A stretch of 62,475 nt of DNA, filler included, from Platydemus manokwari (taxonomy: Eukaryota), in NCBI GenBank assembly GCA_037951405.1. It is 5 parts of 5 records of this genome, joined end to end, with 100 filler letters (N's around TTAATTAATTAA, not from the genome) between each part and the next. Parts side by side here need not be neighbours in the genome. Positions count along the whole stretch, not along the records: positions 53,165 to 62,475 come from JBBMOY011267651.1; 4 more parts are not named here. One strand, 5' to 3'. Shown one piece after another: positions 5,930 through 62,475 of this stretch. The notes below the pieces were generated by a model that was not told the origin of the DNA, did no database searches, and saw nothing but the letters and a program-made list of their open reading frames with translations. The position numbers and the translations under genes were made by a program. Numbering within the stretch: the stretch's first letter is position 1; every line of letters begins with the position of its first letter.

Positions 5930-6727
5930 CTGACCCTTAAAACCAAATTAAGAACGGACAAAATCCGTTTAAAAACCACTACATAAAAATCTCTAAATAA
6001 AAAAGTACATGAGAGAAGTAGCATGCAGAAAATGCTTATATGAAGTGGAATGGTAAACACCCTTTTTAGTTGCTGCAAACTATCCCAATCTTTTATACTC
6101 TATCGGAACGACAGAATCATGGATATACTGGCTAAGGAAATTGTTAACAATAAAGAACACAAAGTCATTATAAATAAAGGATGTCAATTTAAGGAATTCA
6201 AATTAATGGTGGATATTCAACTAATAAATTATCGAAAATCCTTGATCGACTTAATCGATGAAAAAATCCCCATGGACGAACCTGCTTTAAGGGCCGAAAC
6301 AGCTCAAAAGAATATTAAAAAATACACAGACTTCAGAAATTCGATCACAACAAAGCGGCCCGGCTGGTCTGTGAAACTGCTCACTATTGTTTTGTAGGGG
6401 TTCTCTGAACTTGGCAAACACAAACAAACGATACAGTCCTAAAGAAATTAGGGATGAATAAGAAAATGATAAATAAAATAGCTCATGCTAGCATAAAGTC
6501 GCATATAAATGCAACGTATTTGCAATACAGATTCCAAACTGGAAAGAGAATAGCAAAAATGCAACTTCATAAATAGTATGGCGGAGACTGAATTGATTGG
6601 AATTTTGAATTAATTGTATGATTGAACTACCGAATTGTGATTCCTAGATCGATCGAAAGAAAGAACCATGTACATACCATATTTTAATGTATGTGTATCT
6701 CGAATATCAATGTCTATGAATTAGTAG

Positions 6728-53164: not shown

Positions 53165-54945
53165 ATCTGAATTCAACAATTGACTGGTGAACATTCAAAA
53201 TATGGCAACAATCATAGAAAATCACCAATGTCATGAGAGATGTAGGACAAAATTGTAAACAGATTGACATATCGGCCACTATATCGAATAAAAAGCGTAC
53301 AATTGAACACATCATAACCCCATGAAAGAGTTGGATTTCATTAGCAGCCTCTAGTCTTTTTGGTTAGTATCTTTCATTGTGTTTCACTTTAAATGATTTC
53401 AATGTGGAACCAGTCTTTGTGATTGTCTTTTGATCTGTGCACTGTGTGAGCATTTTAAATAAAAATTTTCCAAGATTCAATTTTATATAAAATTTAATTT
53501 GGTATAAAATATTTTTTGTATAAGCCAAATTAATTTGTTTAAATAAATGGATTTTAATATAATTGGACGTCGTTTTCAATGAGTGATTTTTAAAATTAGT
53601 AGTGGCTTATATATTGTATATTATTCGCAATCTCTGAAAAAATTGTTATACATTATGAATCTAATTGCTTATAAGACACGGTTAAAGTGAAAGTCAATAT
53701 ATTTTAAACTCTATGAAAAATATGTCTACGAAAAACAGTTCTCGAAATATCAACTAGATGCCCATATTTTTCGTTAAAATTTTGAGTGTAGGTTGAGTGT
53801 TGGATTAAAAGTAATTAGTGATTCGTATAGTGTGTGATAAAAAACTTATAATTAATTATTGATTTAACGTTTCATTTATTGATTAAATCAATAAGCAAAT
53901 TTAAACTTTTAGCTGCGATTCTCTAAGTTGAAAATCTACTTTGGGTCTCAGAGCCAGTATGAATAGAAAAACGAACAATTATCAGAGTATTACATGATAA
54001 AATTAATTTCCAGTCGTTATCATTTGTTTCTATCAAAATTTAGTACAGAAAAATTATTTTAGTGAAGAGTTTTTGTAGAGAAATTAATGAATATTTGAAA
54101 TTAATGTGAAAATTTTTCGAGATTGATTATTTAAGTAAATTAAAAGAATGATAAAAATAATAGTAAGGCGGACCTAAAATTTTTGAGCATTTTAAATCTA
54201 ATAAAATATTTTCAAACATGCAAATTAAAACTAGTGCTGTTGAGTTGTCATATAAAATCACACACATCAATAAGTTTAGCTAAAATTATAAGATTATGTA
54301 TCACATATTATTATTTATTGATAAATTAAACGGCTAAATCATATCACCACCACATTTAATCCCCAAAGTAACTCTTACTATTAAAGACTTGCAAATTCCG
54401 TATAGTTGTGAATTACGAATAAACAAATCAGAGTATTAAAGACATGTAATAATTAATGAAATTTTAAAAAATTATAAACCTTATAAAATATTAAAAAACA
54501 TACTTTACAAAGCTTGGTGTAATGATAAAAATATTAATTAAATCATATAATTGAGTTACTTATGTATTTATTAAATTGATGCTTTCAGAAGGTGAGTGAA
54601 ATACTTATAATCTTAACTGAATTATTTAATCTAAATTATTTATTATTTTATAGAATTTCTACAATATTAGAATTATGTATTACTTCTAAATTTAAACCTT
54701 ATGAATAATAATATTAATTTTTAGTCTTACTTCGCAGAAATTATAAATTCATAAATAACTTTTAAAAAGTAAAGAAATAAAATAAATCACTACTACTTAT
54801 TAATTAGAAAAAATTAACATTAATGCTGTTTATTAATTTTCGTTTTAATCATATAATTAATAAACATTTTCAAATTACGACGAATTATTTTGTCATACTA
54901 ATTTTGACATGAATTTTGACTATATTTAATTATTTTTTATTTTAG

Positions 54946-55265
54946 TCTGCTATTTTTAATTTCCAAAGTCTACTCACAGTGATATTGTTGCTGATTTGTA
55001 CATGCACTTATATCAGATTTTTTATGCCTTCCATTCTTGATCGTCACAAAACAGGGTTAATTTTTTATCTACGATTTCGATAATTTTGAATTTTATTTTA
55101 TAATTTTCAATTTAGACTTTTAGGGTTATTTTGGAAATGTGCAAGAATAGGTTAAGTGCTTCTAATGAAATTAATTTTTTAAATATTTTCAATATAGGTG
55201 AACGAAAAAGTCCTTGGGTGGCGTCGTGTTGCATCCTGATGTCTTTTTATGTATTATGGTGTTAA
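54946..55265 (+). CDS. TMEM167: Protein kish / TMEM167; initiator ATG must be supplied by splicing
   Basis: Exons 54946-55055, 55116-55150 and 55198-55265; GT-AG introns of 60 and 47 nt, phases 2 and 1. Spliced translation (M)[70 protein letters not shown] closely matches the kish-A family. Not in the ORF track. Confidence 0.95.
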
Positions 55266-56359
55266 TACAATTTAAATTTTTTAATTTTTACAAATTAATT
55301 TTATTGGTTATGATATAATTATTTTAATTTAATGAATGTGCAGCGGTTTGAAGCTTTAGAGCAATTGGTTTGTTGACTGATTGTTATTAAAATGTAAAAG
55401 AAACTAATAAGATTTGTGTAGAAGATCTCAAATAATCTTAGTTTTGGCATGTGAATGGATCTTTTTGTTTCATTCCAAAACCTTGTTGGAAGCCTTATAA
55501 TTATTTAATAGTGGTGAATTAATTTTGTGTTTTTACTAAAGCTAAGTTTTTTGTTTAATGAAAATTGTAATAGTACAAGAAATGATTTTATCAAATTTAT
55601 AATCATGAATTATTAAAATCTTAGTGATACATTATGTTTTTTAAAATTTATCAATAGGATTATTTTTTGCAATAAATTTAGACTTCACTGATTGAATTTC
55701 CTTATAAAATATTTTGATTTAATCAATATTAAAATTCAGAAAAAACCCATTAAACTTTAAATTTTCGCCTCTTGAAATGTATTATTTGTCGTAATTAATC
55801 TCTTCAGTTAAACATTAAATCTCTTGTTGCTACTTAAAATAAAAGTTTTCCAATTTAAAATTAATATATAAGTATTTTTTATTTTAAATGATTAAAAATG
55901 ATTTATGAAAAATTCTCGAATTTTTTTTAAATCATTCATTTTTTCTCATTTCGTGTTTTGGAATTCTCTATTTTCCCCTGTTGATGGAGTCTGGTGTTTA
56001 TCACCCTATCTGTTTACTTAACAGATGATATGATCCAATTAAATAAGTTTTATAATCAGACTCTCGAACCTGTTGTTCCCAAATTAGAACATGTGATTAG
56101 CAAACTAGTGCTAAGTAATCCATGAGTTCGAACTGTCTATTAATGAAGAAGAAATAATGTTACCGATAATGAAAAAATTAAATATTTATAAAAATATGTT
56201 GTCTATTATCACATGTTAAAATATAATTATGAAAACAACCTATTTAACTCCAGCAGATGATTTAATAATACGATTGAGTACAAGAGGACCAGAAATATAA
56301 CTGAATTTCACCCTTTAAAAATTTTAAAATTATTAAGCATAAATGGCTATATATATGTA

Positions 56360-56760
56360 TATAGCGTGCAATTCATAAGTCGCCGTCTCTAAAACTAAAA
56401 TAAAACAATAGTGAGAACAAAGTAAATATATCGAGTCTGTGAAGTCATACGCACTCGTGCAGTTTCTCGTTGATTTATGCCATCATTCTCTTACAAAATT
56501 TACCACCTTTTTCTTCATTATTTCATCAGACGGTCTTTCTGATCGCAACCTAGTGGATAAGTTTCCGGTTTTTTCAAACTTCTATTTCAAGTATTGAACT
56601 GTTGTCCTAGCTGGTAGTGCACGATTGAAATGTTGAATTTCATGGCAAACTTTATTACTACTCTGGTCACTATTGCATGGCTAACTATAAACACTCTACC
56701 CGCATGGGAAAATTTAATACCTCCAGCTAATTTCTTTATACTTCAATAACGCAACTGATT
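56360..56760 (-). mobile_element. Tc1/mariner-superfamily transposase N-terminal remnant (HTH region)
   Basis: Minus strand gives LPARTTVQYLK*KFEKTGNLSTRLRSERP, matching the P-x-R-x-T-I...KF-x-x-TG...RSGRP pattern. The left end tatagcgtg resembles a TA-CAGGGTG terminus. Confidence 0.6.
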
Positions 56761-57519
56761 AATATAAAATTAGAAATAAAGTACATTAATCAGTGAATAA
56801 TAATTAATATCAATGCGTATAAATATGTGAGTATAGATTATATTATGTTTTGTTGTTTTATTTAGTTTAAGAAAAGGAAACTATTAGGAATCTATCCAAG
56901 CACAAATCAATATAATCAAACAAAACCATAAAAAGACAAAATTGAAATAACAAAATTTTATGTGTTAATATAAATTAATAAAAGTAATATTATCAATGCT
57001 AGATATTAAATTGCTTGATTTAACTTATTATTAAATGTACGCCATACTTGGTTTTGAAAAAAACTCTAAAATAATTAAAAAATGTGAATAAAAAGTAATG
57101 GTAATTGGAGAGGATCATTTTCTAAACCCAATCTTCATTAACCTAAACCAAATAACATGGAAATTATAAGTTGTGACAATTTTATGTGTGAACAATTCTT
57201 ATGACATCTATTTACGAACAATTTACATGATATTTATTTATGTAAATTTATTTATTAAAATTTATTAAATTAACTTATTGTTAAATGATAATTATGATAC
57301 CGATAATGCTGTAATAAGAAAATATGAAATTTAATAACTCTTAAACAATCTTTCTTCGATGAAAATAATTCTAATAATAAACTTTGATCCGAAAAATTTC
57401 CGCTCCGAACTTAAGTGGGTCAATGTTATGAAATGCTCTACCTTTATATATTATTTTTCTACGGATTTTTCCAAATTTTTTAATTTTTAAACCAATTTTA
57501 TTCTCACTCGAGGTACAAA

Positions 57520-58010
57520 TTGTTACGTCCTGATGATTTGGTTGATATTACAATAATGTCTTATGGTATTTGTGATTTTGATGACTCTCAAGAGGGAATT
57601 TACCTAATAGTTAGTTAATCTTTCGTCTCAATTACTTTAGCTCTGGTTTTGCTGGGAAAGCACTGGCTGGCTAATGCTTTACTAAATAGTGAGGAGAGCG
57701 AAGATGAGGAAACTCCATTTACTGTTAGCTCTTATGGTGAATGGAAGCACAAAATAGCCGAGGAAAAAACCCAACAATAACAACAGACACCACAGGAATC
57801 TGTGCATAGAGAAGCGGTATTTAAAAAGCCCATAAAAAACCAGAGACCACCGCGCTTGAAATAAACCGCACCTGTAAAACCAAATTCAGCTGCGCTCATA
57901 AAACCAAACCCAAAATGGGAAACTTGGAAAATCAAAACTGGAGTGTGAATTTGGTCAACGAGAATTCGAATCTTCGATAATCCAGTTCCAACTTTGACAA
58001 TCCAGAGTCA
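57520..58010 (+). pseudogene. Decayed ORF of an unknown repeated protein family, copy 2
   Basis: LRPDDLVDITIMSYGIC...CWESTGWLMLY / NSEESEDEETPFTVSSYGEW...VFKKP...TAPVKPN...KWETWKIKTGV*IW; colinear with the 38800-39249 copy, with stops and frameshifts. Confidence 0.65.
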
Positions 58011-58319
58011 ATTCAGAAATTTGTGAATAACATTAATTGATGACATTTTGATAATCTGAAAAAAACATTTTTTATAATTTGATAATTTGACAAAACATTT
58101 TGAGCTTTGAGCATTGTAAATGATGATTTTGTATAAAAATTAAGTAACATTTTTATGAGTTATGATATTGTAAAATATTATTGAATAAAAATATGTGAAA
58201 TAAATATAGGTTATTAAAAATATGTGCATAAAATATACATTATTATTAATAAATCAGACAATTACAATGAGAAATAAGGTAAAGAATAAACAAGAAATTT
58301 AATATTTAATTTGAAAGGT

Positions 58320-58937
58320 TTATTGTTTTATAATAAAAATTTATAAGGTTAGCTAATTTAATCGAATTTTGAAGTTTAAGAATTTTAAAAATGATAAACA
58401 ATTAGGGTTTAAAGTAAGAAAGTGATTTAAAATTGAGAAGGGTGATTGAAAAATTTAGATACAAAATACTGAATTTCAGCATCTATATAAGCTGATGAAT
58501 TTCCATCACAATTCACTTTAAAAAATCTGAAGGCTTGAAATCTTAATCGGTAGTGACTTGGAAAACTAATTTGGAGCGAAAACTATTTTAATCGATAATT
58601 TGATTCGGCAAAATAATAAAGGTAATAGGTAAACAAGTACTATTAATTACTTAATTTATAAACAGAAAAAATATTTAAAATTTAAATCACTCTTAAGAAT
58701 CCGCATTTGGAGTATATATTACAAACTCTATAATAAAATATTAAAGAATCAAACTAAGTTCTGATGATCACGGTGGGATAACTGCACAATTAGTTTAACA
58801 AACAATTGATTGAGGTAAATTGTCTGAGCCTATGTACTATTGTAATTTTGTGTTTATTATAACTAAATAAAAAACTATATAAAAAACTGATTTAGAGAAC
58901 TCACATAAACAGCAAAAACATCATACACAACCCAACA
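58320..58937 (+). mobile_element. LTR-like family A copy
   Basis: Colinear with 16500-17133, including cagcatctatataagctgatgaatttccatcacaattcact and terminal catacacaacccAACA. Confidence 0.65.
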
Positions 58938-60233
58938 GTTTGGAGATAAGGAAAGTGGAACTGGTCACTTATTTTTTATTATAATTTTATTAACTATAGA
59001 ACCTTCACAAATAAAAAAGCGGTTAAATAACAGTGCTTGATGATTTAAATGGAATGAATTCTTAACCCCATTTTGCTGCACTAACTGCACTAAAATTGTG
59101 TTTAATAAATCTATCTGTTATAACAAGATACAATTTAACTACTTTTATACCTAGTAAATAACAAAATACTGTCCAATTCTTGGACAAAAATAATTTATAG
59201 GACGCTTTCATAATATTGGCTCACAAACAGTACGACAAGATTGAGTCTAGCTCCATAAATATGATATATAAGACCGAATATACACGCATATGATTTCATA
59301 TCGCTTACCTATAACCTAGAAAGGCAATCATAACTTGGAAAGAAGTTTTTAAAGAATCTTCTTGTTATTGAACAGGATATATACTTCTAGATATAATTCG
59401 TGAGAATCACCCTTTAATAAATATTCTTCTAAATTTGAGTCTTGAGCTTTAGAATGATTCTAGTCGTTTCGGTATTAAATTCAAGAACAGAGTTCACAAG
59501 CAAATTTTATAAATCTATTTATGTCAAAAATATGCTTCAAATAACCTTTACTTGAGTCAAGAAGAGTTTCTAGAAATGAGTTTACAAAGATAGAACTATT
59601 CTATAACTTCTTTAAAATTAGAGATTGGTAATGGTTTTTTCGTTAATGCTTCAATTGTGATACTGATTGAGTTTGATTTCAACTTCCGAATACTTGTTCC
59701 TTTGTTACAAGACTGAATAAAATTATTTATTATTTTTTTTATTTAATTAATTTTTTTGTTTTCAGTCTTTATATTACAAATATTGAAGTATAATAATGAT
59801 TGAATTAGAAAATGAATTATAGTGTATTACAAGTACTTGTTCTTTTATGATAATTACACATTTCAAATTACTTTTATTATTTATTTCTGAAAATATAACA
59901 TTTGTTTAAGTAATCCATTTGCAAATGATGATTTTCAAAATTATAGTTTTTGTTAATTTTAACTGTCATTTATTTTATTTAAAATTTTTAAAGTCTACTA
60001 TCGTTTATATTTGATTTTTCCAATTTTCGTTTTATTTAAAGTGAATTTATTTAATTTTCTAATACTTTTCTATTTGGTTCTAAAATTTTACAATTTAAGA
60101 TATTTATAAAAACTATAATTCCGATTAATATCATTTACGAACTTAGAAATAAAGTTATATGAAACCAGTTTATATTTATTACTAATGTTACTTTTTACAG
60201 TACATTTTGACTCTACCATTGGTTATATTTTAG

Positions 60234-60452
60234 GCAAGTTTATTTAAAAAAGCTGTCTACGACAGTCGACCACTTTGGAAACTAGTTCAACGAAGATATG
60301 ATCCTCAAAAGATAATTAAAGAACAACTCAAATTTAATACCTATACTCCTCTACCTAAAATACCTTTTTTAGTCTGTTGGACTACTTGTGTTGGTGTAGC
60401 TGCAGCAGGAATTTATATTTATGGATGGGAGATGTTCGAGGATTATGATTAG
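60234..60452 (+). CDS. Coding exon of a ~73-aa single-pass microprotein, possibly mitochondrial; ATG must be supplied by splicing
   Basis: After acceptor ttttag, a GC-richer open frame reads ASLFKKAVYDSRPLWKLVQRRYDPQKIIKEQLKFNTYTPLPKIPFLVCWTTCVGVAAAGIYIYGWEMFEDYD*: basic N-terminus, one TM helix, acidic tail. AATAAA at 60483-60488. Not in the ORF track. Confidence 0.6.
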   Translation, partial: ASLFKKAVYDSRPLWKLVQRRYDPQKIIKEQLKFNTYTPLPKIPFLVCWTTCVGVAAAGIYIYGWEMFEDYD

Positions 60453-61204
60453 GACGATAGTTTATATTTATGATGCTTAATTAATAAAGATAGTTCTAGT
60501 TATTTTTAACTTGATTTTATTGAATTTCGTTTTTTAAACTATCGTTATTTATATTGATTTCTTAATTAAGCATTAATGTAATTGTTTAAAATTCTTCAAA
60601 TTATATGTTATCACGTCTCCGCGACAACAAATATTTATTTGACATGTTATCGTTATTAATAGATTCAATGCAGAAAAATTCTAATTTTAAAAAGAAATCT
60701 AACCAATTTGTAAATATTATGGATTAAGAGTGTCATCACTTAGTGCGTTGGCATATATTATCGGTTATCCAAGAAAACTTCATGATTTCACTAGCAAAGC
60801 TCATGAAGTACGAATAAAGAAATATATCTACGAAAAAATATTAATGAAATATCACAAAGTAAAAAAATCGAGAATAAACCAGTTATCATACGACTCACGT
60901 AATCATATTTAACAACTGAGGAAACTAAGGAAAAATATAAACTTTTAATTATAACTATTATTTTCTTTAAAGCAGTTTTATCAATTTAATTTGTCAAGTT
61001 CATTTTTTCAATTAGCAATATTGAATTAATTATATTTTTAAACATTGTTTTTATCATTTTAAGGAAATCAAGTCTTATTTATTGAAATATATAAGGAATT
61101 GGATTAAATTTTATTTCATAAGGAAACTATTTCCATTTTATTTTATTATTTTGTTTTTATAATTATAAATTAATATATAAATAATTACTTATAAATAAAT
61201 TATC

Positions 61205-61651
61205 ATGACAACGGTTCTTATGAAACGATTAAAAATGGAATTGAAATTTTTAAAAGAATGCCCATTAGTTGATGCCAAACCAAATGAAGATGACATTCTT
61301 CATTGGAAAGCAACTGTTCAAGGACCTCCTGACAGTCCCTATGAAGGAGGAATATTCAAATTTGATCTCTTCCTGCCTTCAGAGTATCCTTTTAAGGCAC
61401 CACAAGTCAATGTAGTTACAAAAATATTTCATCCCAACATACTTGAATCGAGAATCTGTGTGGATATTTTAGAAAATGGGTGGACTGCTGTTATGAACAT
61501 TCAAAAATTGCTTTTATCAATAGCATCTTTATTGACGGATCCCAATACTGCAAGTCCACTCAATGCCAAGGCGGCAAAATTATATGATTCGAACAGACAT
61601 AAGTACAATGAAGAAGTAATTCAATGGGTAAAAGATTTTGCATCAGAATAA
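61205..61651 (+). CDS. Ubiquitin-conjugating enzyme E2, divergent Ubc4/5 (UBE2D-like), intronless, 148 aa
   Basis: KRL..EL, W.ATVQGPPDSPYEGG.F, YPFKAP, TKIFHPNI, catalytic Cys in RICVDIL, LLTDPN..SPLN..AA; AATAAA at ~61693. Confidence 0.93.
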   Translation: MTTVLMKRLKMELKFLKECPLVDAKPNEDDILHWKATVQGPPDSPYEGGIFKFDLFLPSEYPFKAPQVNVVTKIFHPNILESRICVDILENGWTAVMNIQKLLLSIASLLTDPNTASPLNAKAAKLYDSNRHKYNEEVIQWVKDFASE

Positions 61652-62475
61652 AATGAAACTTTTATTTCTATATTAAGCACATCATAAATATTAATAAATT
61701 TGAAATAATTATTTTTTACTTTGACTTCAATTGACAACTCGAATCTAATTATATATGCGCAAGAGGTCAATATGTATCTTAAGAATATTGTTCTTTGGAA
61801 TAGGCATAATTATATTTATTACGTTTTTAACATTTTGCTTGATTGAAAGCTAATGTGTCTCCATACAGAAAAAAATTCACACAGAGCAAAAATATAATGT
61901 AAAATTATGTATAGTAACATGACAAAATTTTGTAACTAGTTTAGTTCTCAGAATATATGTAGTATTGCTTAATGTACACCCAGAGGAGTTCTTGATATTT
62001 GATAGCAGAATATCTACAACGGTTACTGGGAATTTTGTTATACAACCAGAGGGGGTCTCTATATTGATAGATTATCGGAGGTATACTACTTATGGAGTAT
62101 GTGATAATTTTATCATACTGTTTTTTAAATTCAAAAGTTCCGTTAGCCTACTACTTGTATAAGTCTCTTGAGTTCTTATTTTTTACTTAGTGGAATACCT
62201 TTTTACTTATTTTAATTAGTGCCAATTTTCATTATTTATTGATTTGGTTTTTATAATTGCAATTATTATTTCATTTTATTTATCCTACTTATTAATAATT
62301 ATCGATTAATTATATTTGATCATTGCTTTATTTTGATGTTTATTTATTTATTCATTTAGAAATTACTTTACTTTATTTTCCCTAAGTTCATTGCACTACT
62401 TTATTGTGATTTATTTAATTTTTTAATAAAGTCATTGATTTAATTTATCGTCGCTTTTTATTGATCATTCTACAA

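Follow-up and report, generated by a model that had tools for sequence, protein, structure and literature searches.

A kish-A gene beginning at codon 2 in Platydemus manokwari: a candidate for initiation by the AUG of a spliced leader

The spliced leaders (SLs) that have been reported from flatworms all end in ATG, and cis-splicing and trans-splicing widely use the same acceptors in these animals (PMC12582326). The AUG delivered in this way can be used as the initiator codon of the mRNA that receives it. Passages of PMC3510090, PMC9851317 and PMC7653826, citing Cheng et al. (2006), describe this use as conserved in Neodermata, in schistosomes as well as in Echinococcus, and put the number of Schistosoma mansoni cDNAs needing the SL AUG at more than 40. 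An earlier interpretation of the DNA treated here, made from the sequence alone (the sequence-only reading), had taken it as established that flatworm SLs end in AUG and can provide the initiator, and the passages of PMC9851317 and PMC3510090 together with PMC12582326 bear this out. In the published cases the junction between SL and coding sequence has been proven by SL-bearing cDNAs or reads. The case closest to the present one is Smp_028410 of S. mansoni ("Transmembrane protein 167A"), which belongs to the orthologous gene family and has been found experimentally among the frequently SL-trans-spliced transcripts (Boroni et al., 2018; PMC5832876): its SL-trapping mean is 146,528 and it has 59 SL-bearing RNA-seq reads (PMC5832876, supplement 5), the average for genes in both S. 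mansoni data sets being 507 read counts (PMC5832876). At the level of the gene, the kish orthologue is a strong SL client in another flatworm. The supplements of PMC12582326, PMC3510090, PMC7653826 and PMC8629364 hold no entries for kish or TMEM167.

The window, by which we mean the whole stretch of DNA analysed, comprises 62,475 nucleotides from the flatworm Platydemus manokwari. Its last piece (53165-62475, 9.3 kb) is very AT-rich, with a GC content of 0.18-0.35 per 500 nt, and carries the kish-A gene whose parts are listed in Table 1. Exon 1 opens TCTGCTATTT at 54946, that is, with the Ser that stands second in the conserved N-terminal MSAIFNF, and the joined exons make up 70 codons and a stop in a family whose length is about 72 residues. 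The sequence-only reading had placed the start of kish at an acceptor exactly at codon 2, with the Met alone absent; the exons, their translation and the acceptor-exon joint, tttttattttag/TCT, all agree with that description. Both family motifs are kept, the N-terminal M-S-A-[IL]-F-N-F-Q-S-L-L (less its Met) and the central one. GC is 0.31-0.41 in the exons vs 0.15-0.17 in the introns.

Protein searches were run exon by exon and not with the joined three-exon protein; in one of them the frame of exon 1 was lengthened by nine open read-through codons (54946-55080), which admits 72-residue proteins. Exon 1 alone matches the Pfam family DUF1242 (Kish, PF06842) with an E value of 2.5e-14 and 53.3 bits, the cut-off being 25. 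Its identity to kish proteins of animals and fungi is 78-87%, with 87% the highest value in the protein collection, from which the kish protein of this gene is itself absent. Every named one of its 594 HMMER matches is a kish protein; the best single-domain match among 1.8 billion representatives is the kish protein of Echinococcus granulosus. The top HMMER match of all (P0001) was rejected as a kish relative: it is a spurious match, a tandem-repeat ORF of 1,440 residues in which the hydrophobic core is weakly matched 25 times. In the contigs of one DNA sequencing run, the depth over kish-A equals the single-copy baseline, and no second copy at a likeness of at least 90% was found in them; nor do they contain any spliced joint over kish-A. 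The locus is most likely an intact, single-copy kish-A gene, in which the intron following the start codon retains its ancestral position.

Table 1. Features of the kish-A locus in the window and the start region of kish in five parasitic flatworms (a slash marks a splice joint)
Feature	Position	Strand	Description
kish-A (TMEM167A, DUF1242) gene	54946-55265	+	three exons: codons 2-71 and stop
kish-A exon 1	54946-55055	+	codons 2-37 and two bases of codon 38; ends GG/gttaat
kish-A intron after KTG	55056-55115	+	60 nt, gttaat…atttag, phase 2, GC 0.15
kish-A exon 2	55116-55150	+	11 residues between split G codons
kish-A intron after exon 2	55151-55197	+	47 nt, gttaag…atatag, phase 1, GC 0.17
kish-A exon 3 (last)	55198-55265	+	21 residues after split G, begins ERKSPWVA…, TAA stop
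U-rich tract and AG acceptor	54926-54945	+	…ttattttttattttag; candidate SL trans-splice acceptor or intron-1 cis acceptor
ATG/AA without donor	54909-54911	+	34 nt before acceptor; frame stops after 6 codons
Best in-piece cis first coding exon	54148-54162	+	ATGATAAAAATAATA/gtaagg; would put MIKII before SAIFNF
Echinococcus multilocularis kish			ATG/GT, 35-nt intron, AG/TCN
Hymenolepis diminuta kish			ATG/GT, 35-nt intron, AG/TCN
Fasciolopsis buski kish			ATG/GT, 39-nt intron, AG/TCN
Paragonimus westermani kish			ATG/GT, 38-nt intron, AG/TCN
Schistosoma japonicum kish			ATG/GT, 47-nt intron, AG/TCN

Where does the initiator methionine come from? The acceptor joins codon 2 in phase 0, and its last three bases (TAG, 54943-54945) are at the same time the AG of the acceptor and an in-frame stop immediately before the codon for Ser2. 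A start further upstream that is simply read through into the exon is therefore impossible. Since, in addition, codon 28 is the first in-frame ATG in the genomic sequence, splicing must bring in the start codon. The obvious source would be an upstream exon ending in ATG and followed by a GT donor. The sequence-only reading had found no ATG/GT in the 1.8 kb upstream, and a count on the + strand gives the same result: ATGGT does not occur between 53165 and 54945, the 1,781 nt that make up all of the upstream sequence in the piece. This stretch contains 29 ATGs and has a G content of 0.125 and a T content of 0.376, from which about 1.4 ATGGT would be expected and none with a probability of about 0.26. 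By composition the absence is unremarkable; it is notable only beside the relatives. An ATG/GC joint was considered as an alternative donor and rejected, as the sole ATGGC (53202) does not lie in a donor-like context.

The position of the acceptor is a property of the family. Met stands immediately before Ser-Ala-Ile/Leu-Phe in 124 of the kish models fetched from databases, which range from fungi to vertebrates. In 59 other models SAIFNF is preceded by Q, which is a read-through CAG acceptor, and many more have unrelated predicted first exons whose joint falls exactly at Ser2. Judged from these models, the codon-2 acceptor marks an intron position that is ancestral for kish-A in animals, and exon 1 normally consists of the 5′ UTR and the ATG only. 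Thus, an acceptor at codon 2 is by itself no evidence for trans-splicing.

What sets the present locus apart is seen when it is placed beside its relatives, namely the genomic kish loci of the five parasitic flatworms in Table 1 and a DNA contig (L009) in which ATG/gtaaga lies about 160 nt upstream of the kish acceptor. Two further kish contigs (L002, L008) were set aside as uninformative on flatworms, being intronless RNA contigs with an ordinary 5′ UTR before the ATG. In a MAFFT alignment, the codon-2 acceptor of the window aligns with the intron-1 acceptor of the five flatworm loci, with which it is identical in position and phase. The other introns have counterparts too: that after KTG is common to the window, cestodes and trematodes, and that at 55151-55197 is shared with F. 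buski. Whereas the five relatives have ATG/GT 35-47 nt before the acceptor, the window has an ATG followed by AA at 34 nt and lacks ATG/GT for 1.78 kb. By this comparison the kish-A locus is atypical, in that the nearby cis donor of every relative inspected is absent from it.

The best explanation, to which we give an even chance of being right, is that an AUG-terminated SL trans-spliced to 54945/54946 supplies the Met of kish-A. The pre-mRNA would start a short way upstream of the acceptor, an SL with AUG as its last three bases would be joined onto 54945/54946, and the product, …AUG-UCU-GCU…, would be translated with Met-Ser-Ala-Ile-Phe-Asn-Phe restored. Two parts of this explanation are inferred, first that P. 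manokwari possesses an AUG-terminated SL and second that this SL joins at the kish-A acceptor. An SL AUG at this acceptor would be in frame, and an AUG there is needed to match the orthologous N-terminus. The locus resembles the published SL-AUG mRNAs of flatworms in that its ORF starts with codon 2 directly after an acceptor, in phase 0, in that an AUG-ending SL would exactly restore its N-terminus, and in that the 1,781 nt upstream of it in the piece contain no ATG/GT; it differs from them in that it is known from genomic DNA alone. No SL RNA gene was detected in the 9.3-kb piece by an Rfam scan or by an ATGGT scan of both strands. Initiation at an SL AUG is a known mechanism of flatworms, of which kish-A, if the explanation is true, would be a new instance.

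The proposal of the sequence-only reading that SL trans-splicing may replace an exon contributing only the ATG has thus gained on one side and lost on the other. It is favoured by the fact that all five flatworm loci have the cis ATG/GT that is absent here and that Smp_028410 is SL-trapped, and it can no longer draw on the codon-2 acceptor, which is ancestral. S. japonicum, a congener of S. mansoni, keeps a genomic ATG/GT 47 nt upstream of the acceptor, and therefore cis- and trans-splicing there could yield the same protein; in the window the donor is absent. Because the intron lies directly after the ATG, SL trans-splicing to the acceptor would give the same protein as cis-splicing, so that the cis exon could decay. 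More tentatively, and with a degree of doubt, it may be supposed that the ancestral ATG-ending exon has been lost in this lineage, the donor being gone and an ATG/AA being left, and that the SL AUG is now the sole start codon of kish-A, a universally conserved protein of 71 residues; the locus would then be a clean case of a coding exon replaced by an SL, made possible by the place of the ancestral intron. The ATG at 54909-54911 may be the relic of the lost exon end, as it shares a column with the exon-1 ATG of Fasciolopsis, Hymenolepis and Echinococcus in the MAFFT alignment; it is a lead only, since by the upstream base counts chance alone would put an ATG 30-50 nt before the acceptor about 29% of the time. 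Contigs of the DNA run agree with the window in this region, with no read-level variants. If the explanation is true, the SL could stand in perfectly for exon 1 thanks to the ancestral intron right after the ATG, and, if it is confirmed, a start-codon exon can become dispensable through an AUG-ending SL.

The chief rival to initiation by an SL is ordinary cis-splicing from an exon 1 (5′ UTR and ATG) that lies more than 1.78 kb upstream, past the edge of the piece, as with the long intron 1 of vertebrate kish-A. We regard it as unlikely, if far from negligible. In most animals the ancestral intron behind the ATG is served by a cis exon, maybe kilobases away, and both the models with Q before SAIFNF and the many alternative first exons joined at Ser2 fit such a gene. 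The 200 nt upstream of the acceptor, with a GC content of 0.155, are intron-like in composition, and equally outron-like; the high-copy repeat at 53357-53740 is what would be expected of an intron expanded by insertions, and chance could account for the lack of ATGGT in 1.78 kb. However, a long first intron would sit oddly with the remaining two introns of the gene, which measure just 47 and 60 nt, and in six of six genomic relatives inspected the ATG/GT is at most about 160 nt away.

It is very improbable that the locus is a non-functional copy whose exon-1 donor was recently lost (ATG/GT to ATG/AA) and which is not translated, a working kish being located elsewhere. The donor-less ATG at the ancestral distance would suit such a history, but 70 of 70 codons are open in a genome of 25% GC, the four internal splice sites are canonical, the conserved motifs are intact at 78-87% identity to distant animals, and the depth is that of a single copy with no second one at a likeness of at least 90%. 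Least probable of all is a cis first exon within the piece, for example 54148-54162 (MIKII) or 53758-53787 (MPIFFVKILS), giving an N-terminally extended Kish: the exon at 54148-54162 named by the sequence-only reading is indeed present and in frame with a good gtaagg donor, one of six such in-frame possibilities (ATG…/GT) upstream, but exons of this kind are to be expected of random AT-rich sequence, none has exon-like GC, and Met stands directly before Ser in the 124 database models.

The locus also bears on annotation. Gene finders miss or mis-build kish in flatworms, and a locus like the one described here would be annotated as start-less or as beginning at Met28. Errors at the 5′ end are frequent in the flatworm kish models of the databases, the ATG-only coding part of exon 1 having been missed. 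The models of F. buski and S. japonicum, of 85 and 108 aa, respectively, run on through intron 1, and that of E. granulosus (103 aa) opens with an unrelated exon. For Mesocestoides corti (62 aa) and Hydatigera taeniaeformis (45 aa), an internal Met has been taken as the start.

A second ORF without a start codon is located in the same piece at 60234-60449 (+). It comprises 72 codons, begins directly after a ttttag acceptor with an in-frame TAG, lacks an in-frame ATG for about 65 codons and has an exon-like GC content of 0.347; its TAG stop is followed 34 nt on by AATAAA at 60483. According to predictions, the product crosses the membrane once and has an acidic tail. No match was obtained in Pfam or PDB, and the Atlas gives only weak leads to small mitochondrial membrane proteins. 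By analogy of layout with kish, the ORF may be a second client of the SL AUG; it could instead have a cis ATG exon, the nearest ATG/GT being at 59631.

Taeniid tapeworms have an ORF of 68-71 residues within about 100 nt after kish. The cDNA-derived Taenia solium protein Q8MPC6 starts MHTMFSK, and a chimeric model derived from the genome joins an exon at HTMFSK. The corresponding site of E. multilocularis reads tag/TGCCCTATG (L001, 6380-6596). On these sequences, the first Met of Q8MPC6, which is not encoded in the genome at the acceptor, looks like an SL AUG. Homology between the taeniid small protein and the ORF at 60234-60449 was considered and rejected, BLASTP giving an E value of 1.8 and neither protein having a Pfam family.

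The surroundings of kish differ between the window and the parasitic flatworms. In E. multilocularis (L001, 6001-9845), H. diminuta (L005, 5001-10289), P. westermani and S. japonicum (L006, L007), an AIF-like Pyr_redox_2 gene follows kish on the same strand after about 400-550 nt, and in E. multilocularis a 68-residue ORF (6390-6596) lies between the two, an arrangement to which Taenia models point as well. The kish-AIF arrangement looks like a conserved, operon-like cluster; it is absent from the window piece. Here, an intronless gene for a ubiquitin-conjugating enzyme (E2) with its own ATG is found at 61205-61651 (+), encoding 148 residues (UQ_con, E 1e-41). This E2 is unusually divergent, its best identity being 66%, to a metagenome contig, and all others being below 50%.

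The piece also contains three very high-copy repeats, at 56237-57004, 58349-58540 and 53357-53740, with depths of about 51,000, 12,000 and 1,300, respectively, vs a baseline of about 12-20. No recognised protein domains were found in them. In the repeat at 56237-57004, the ends are imperfectly inverted, near 56378-56404 and 56856-56882.
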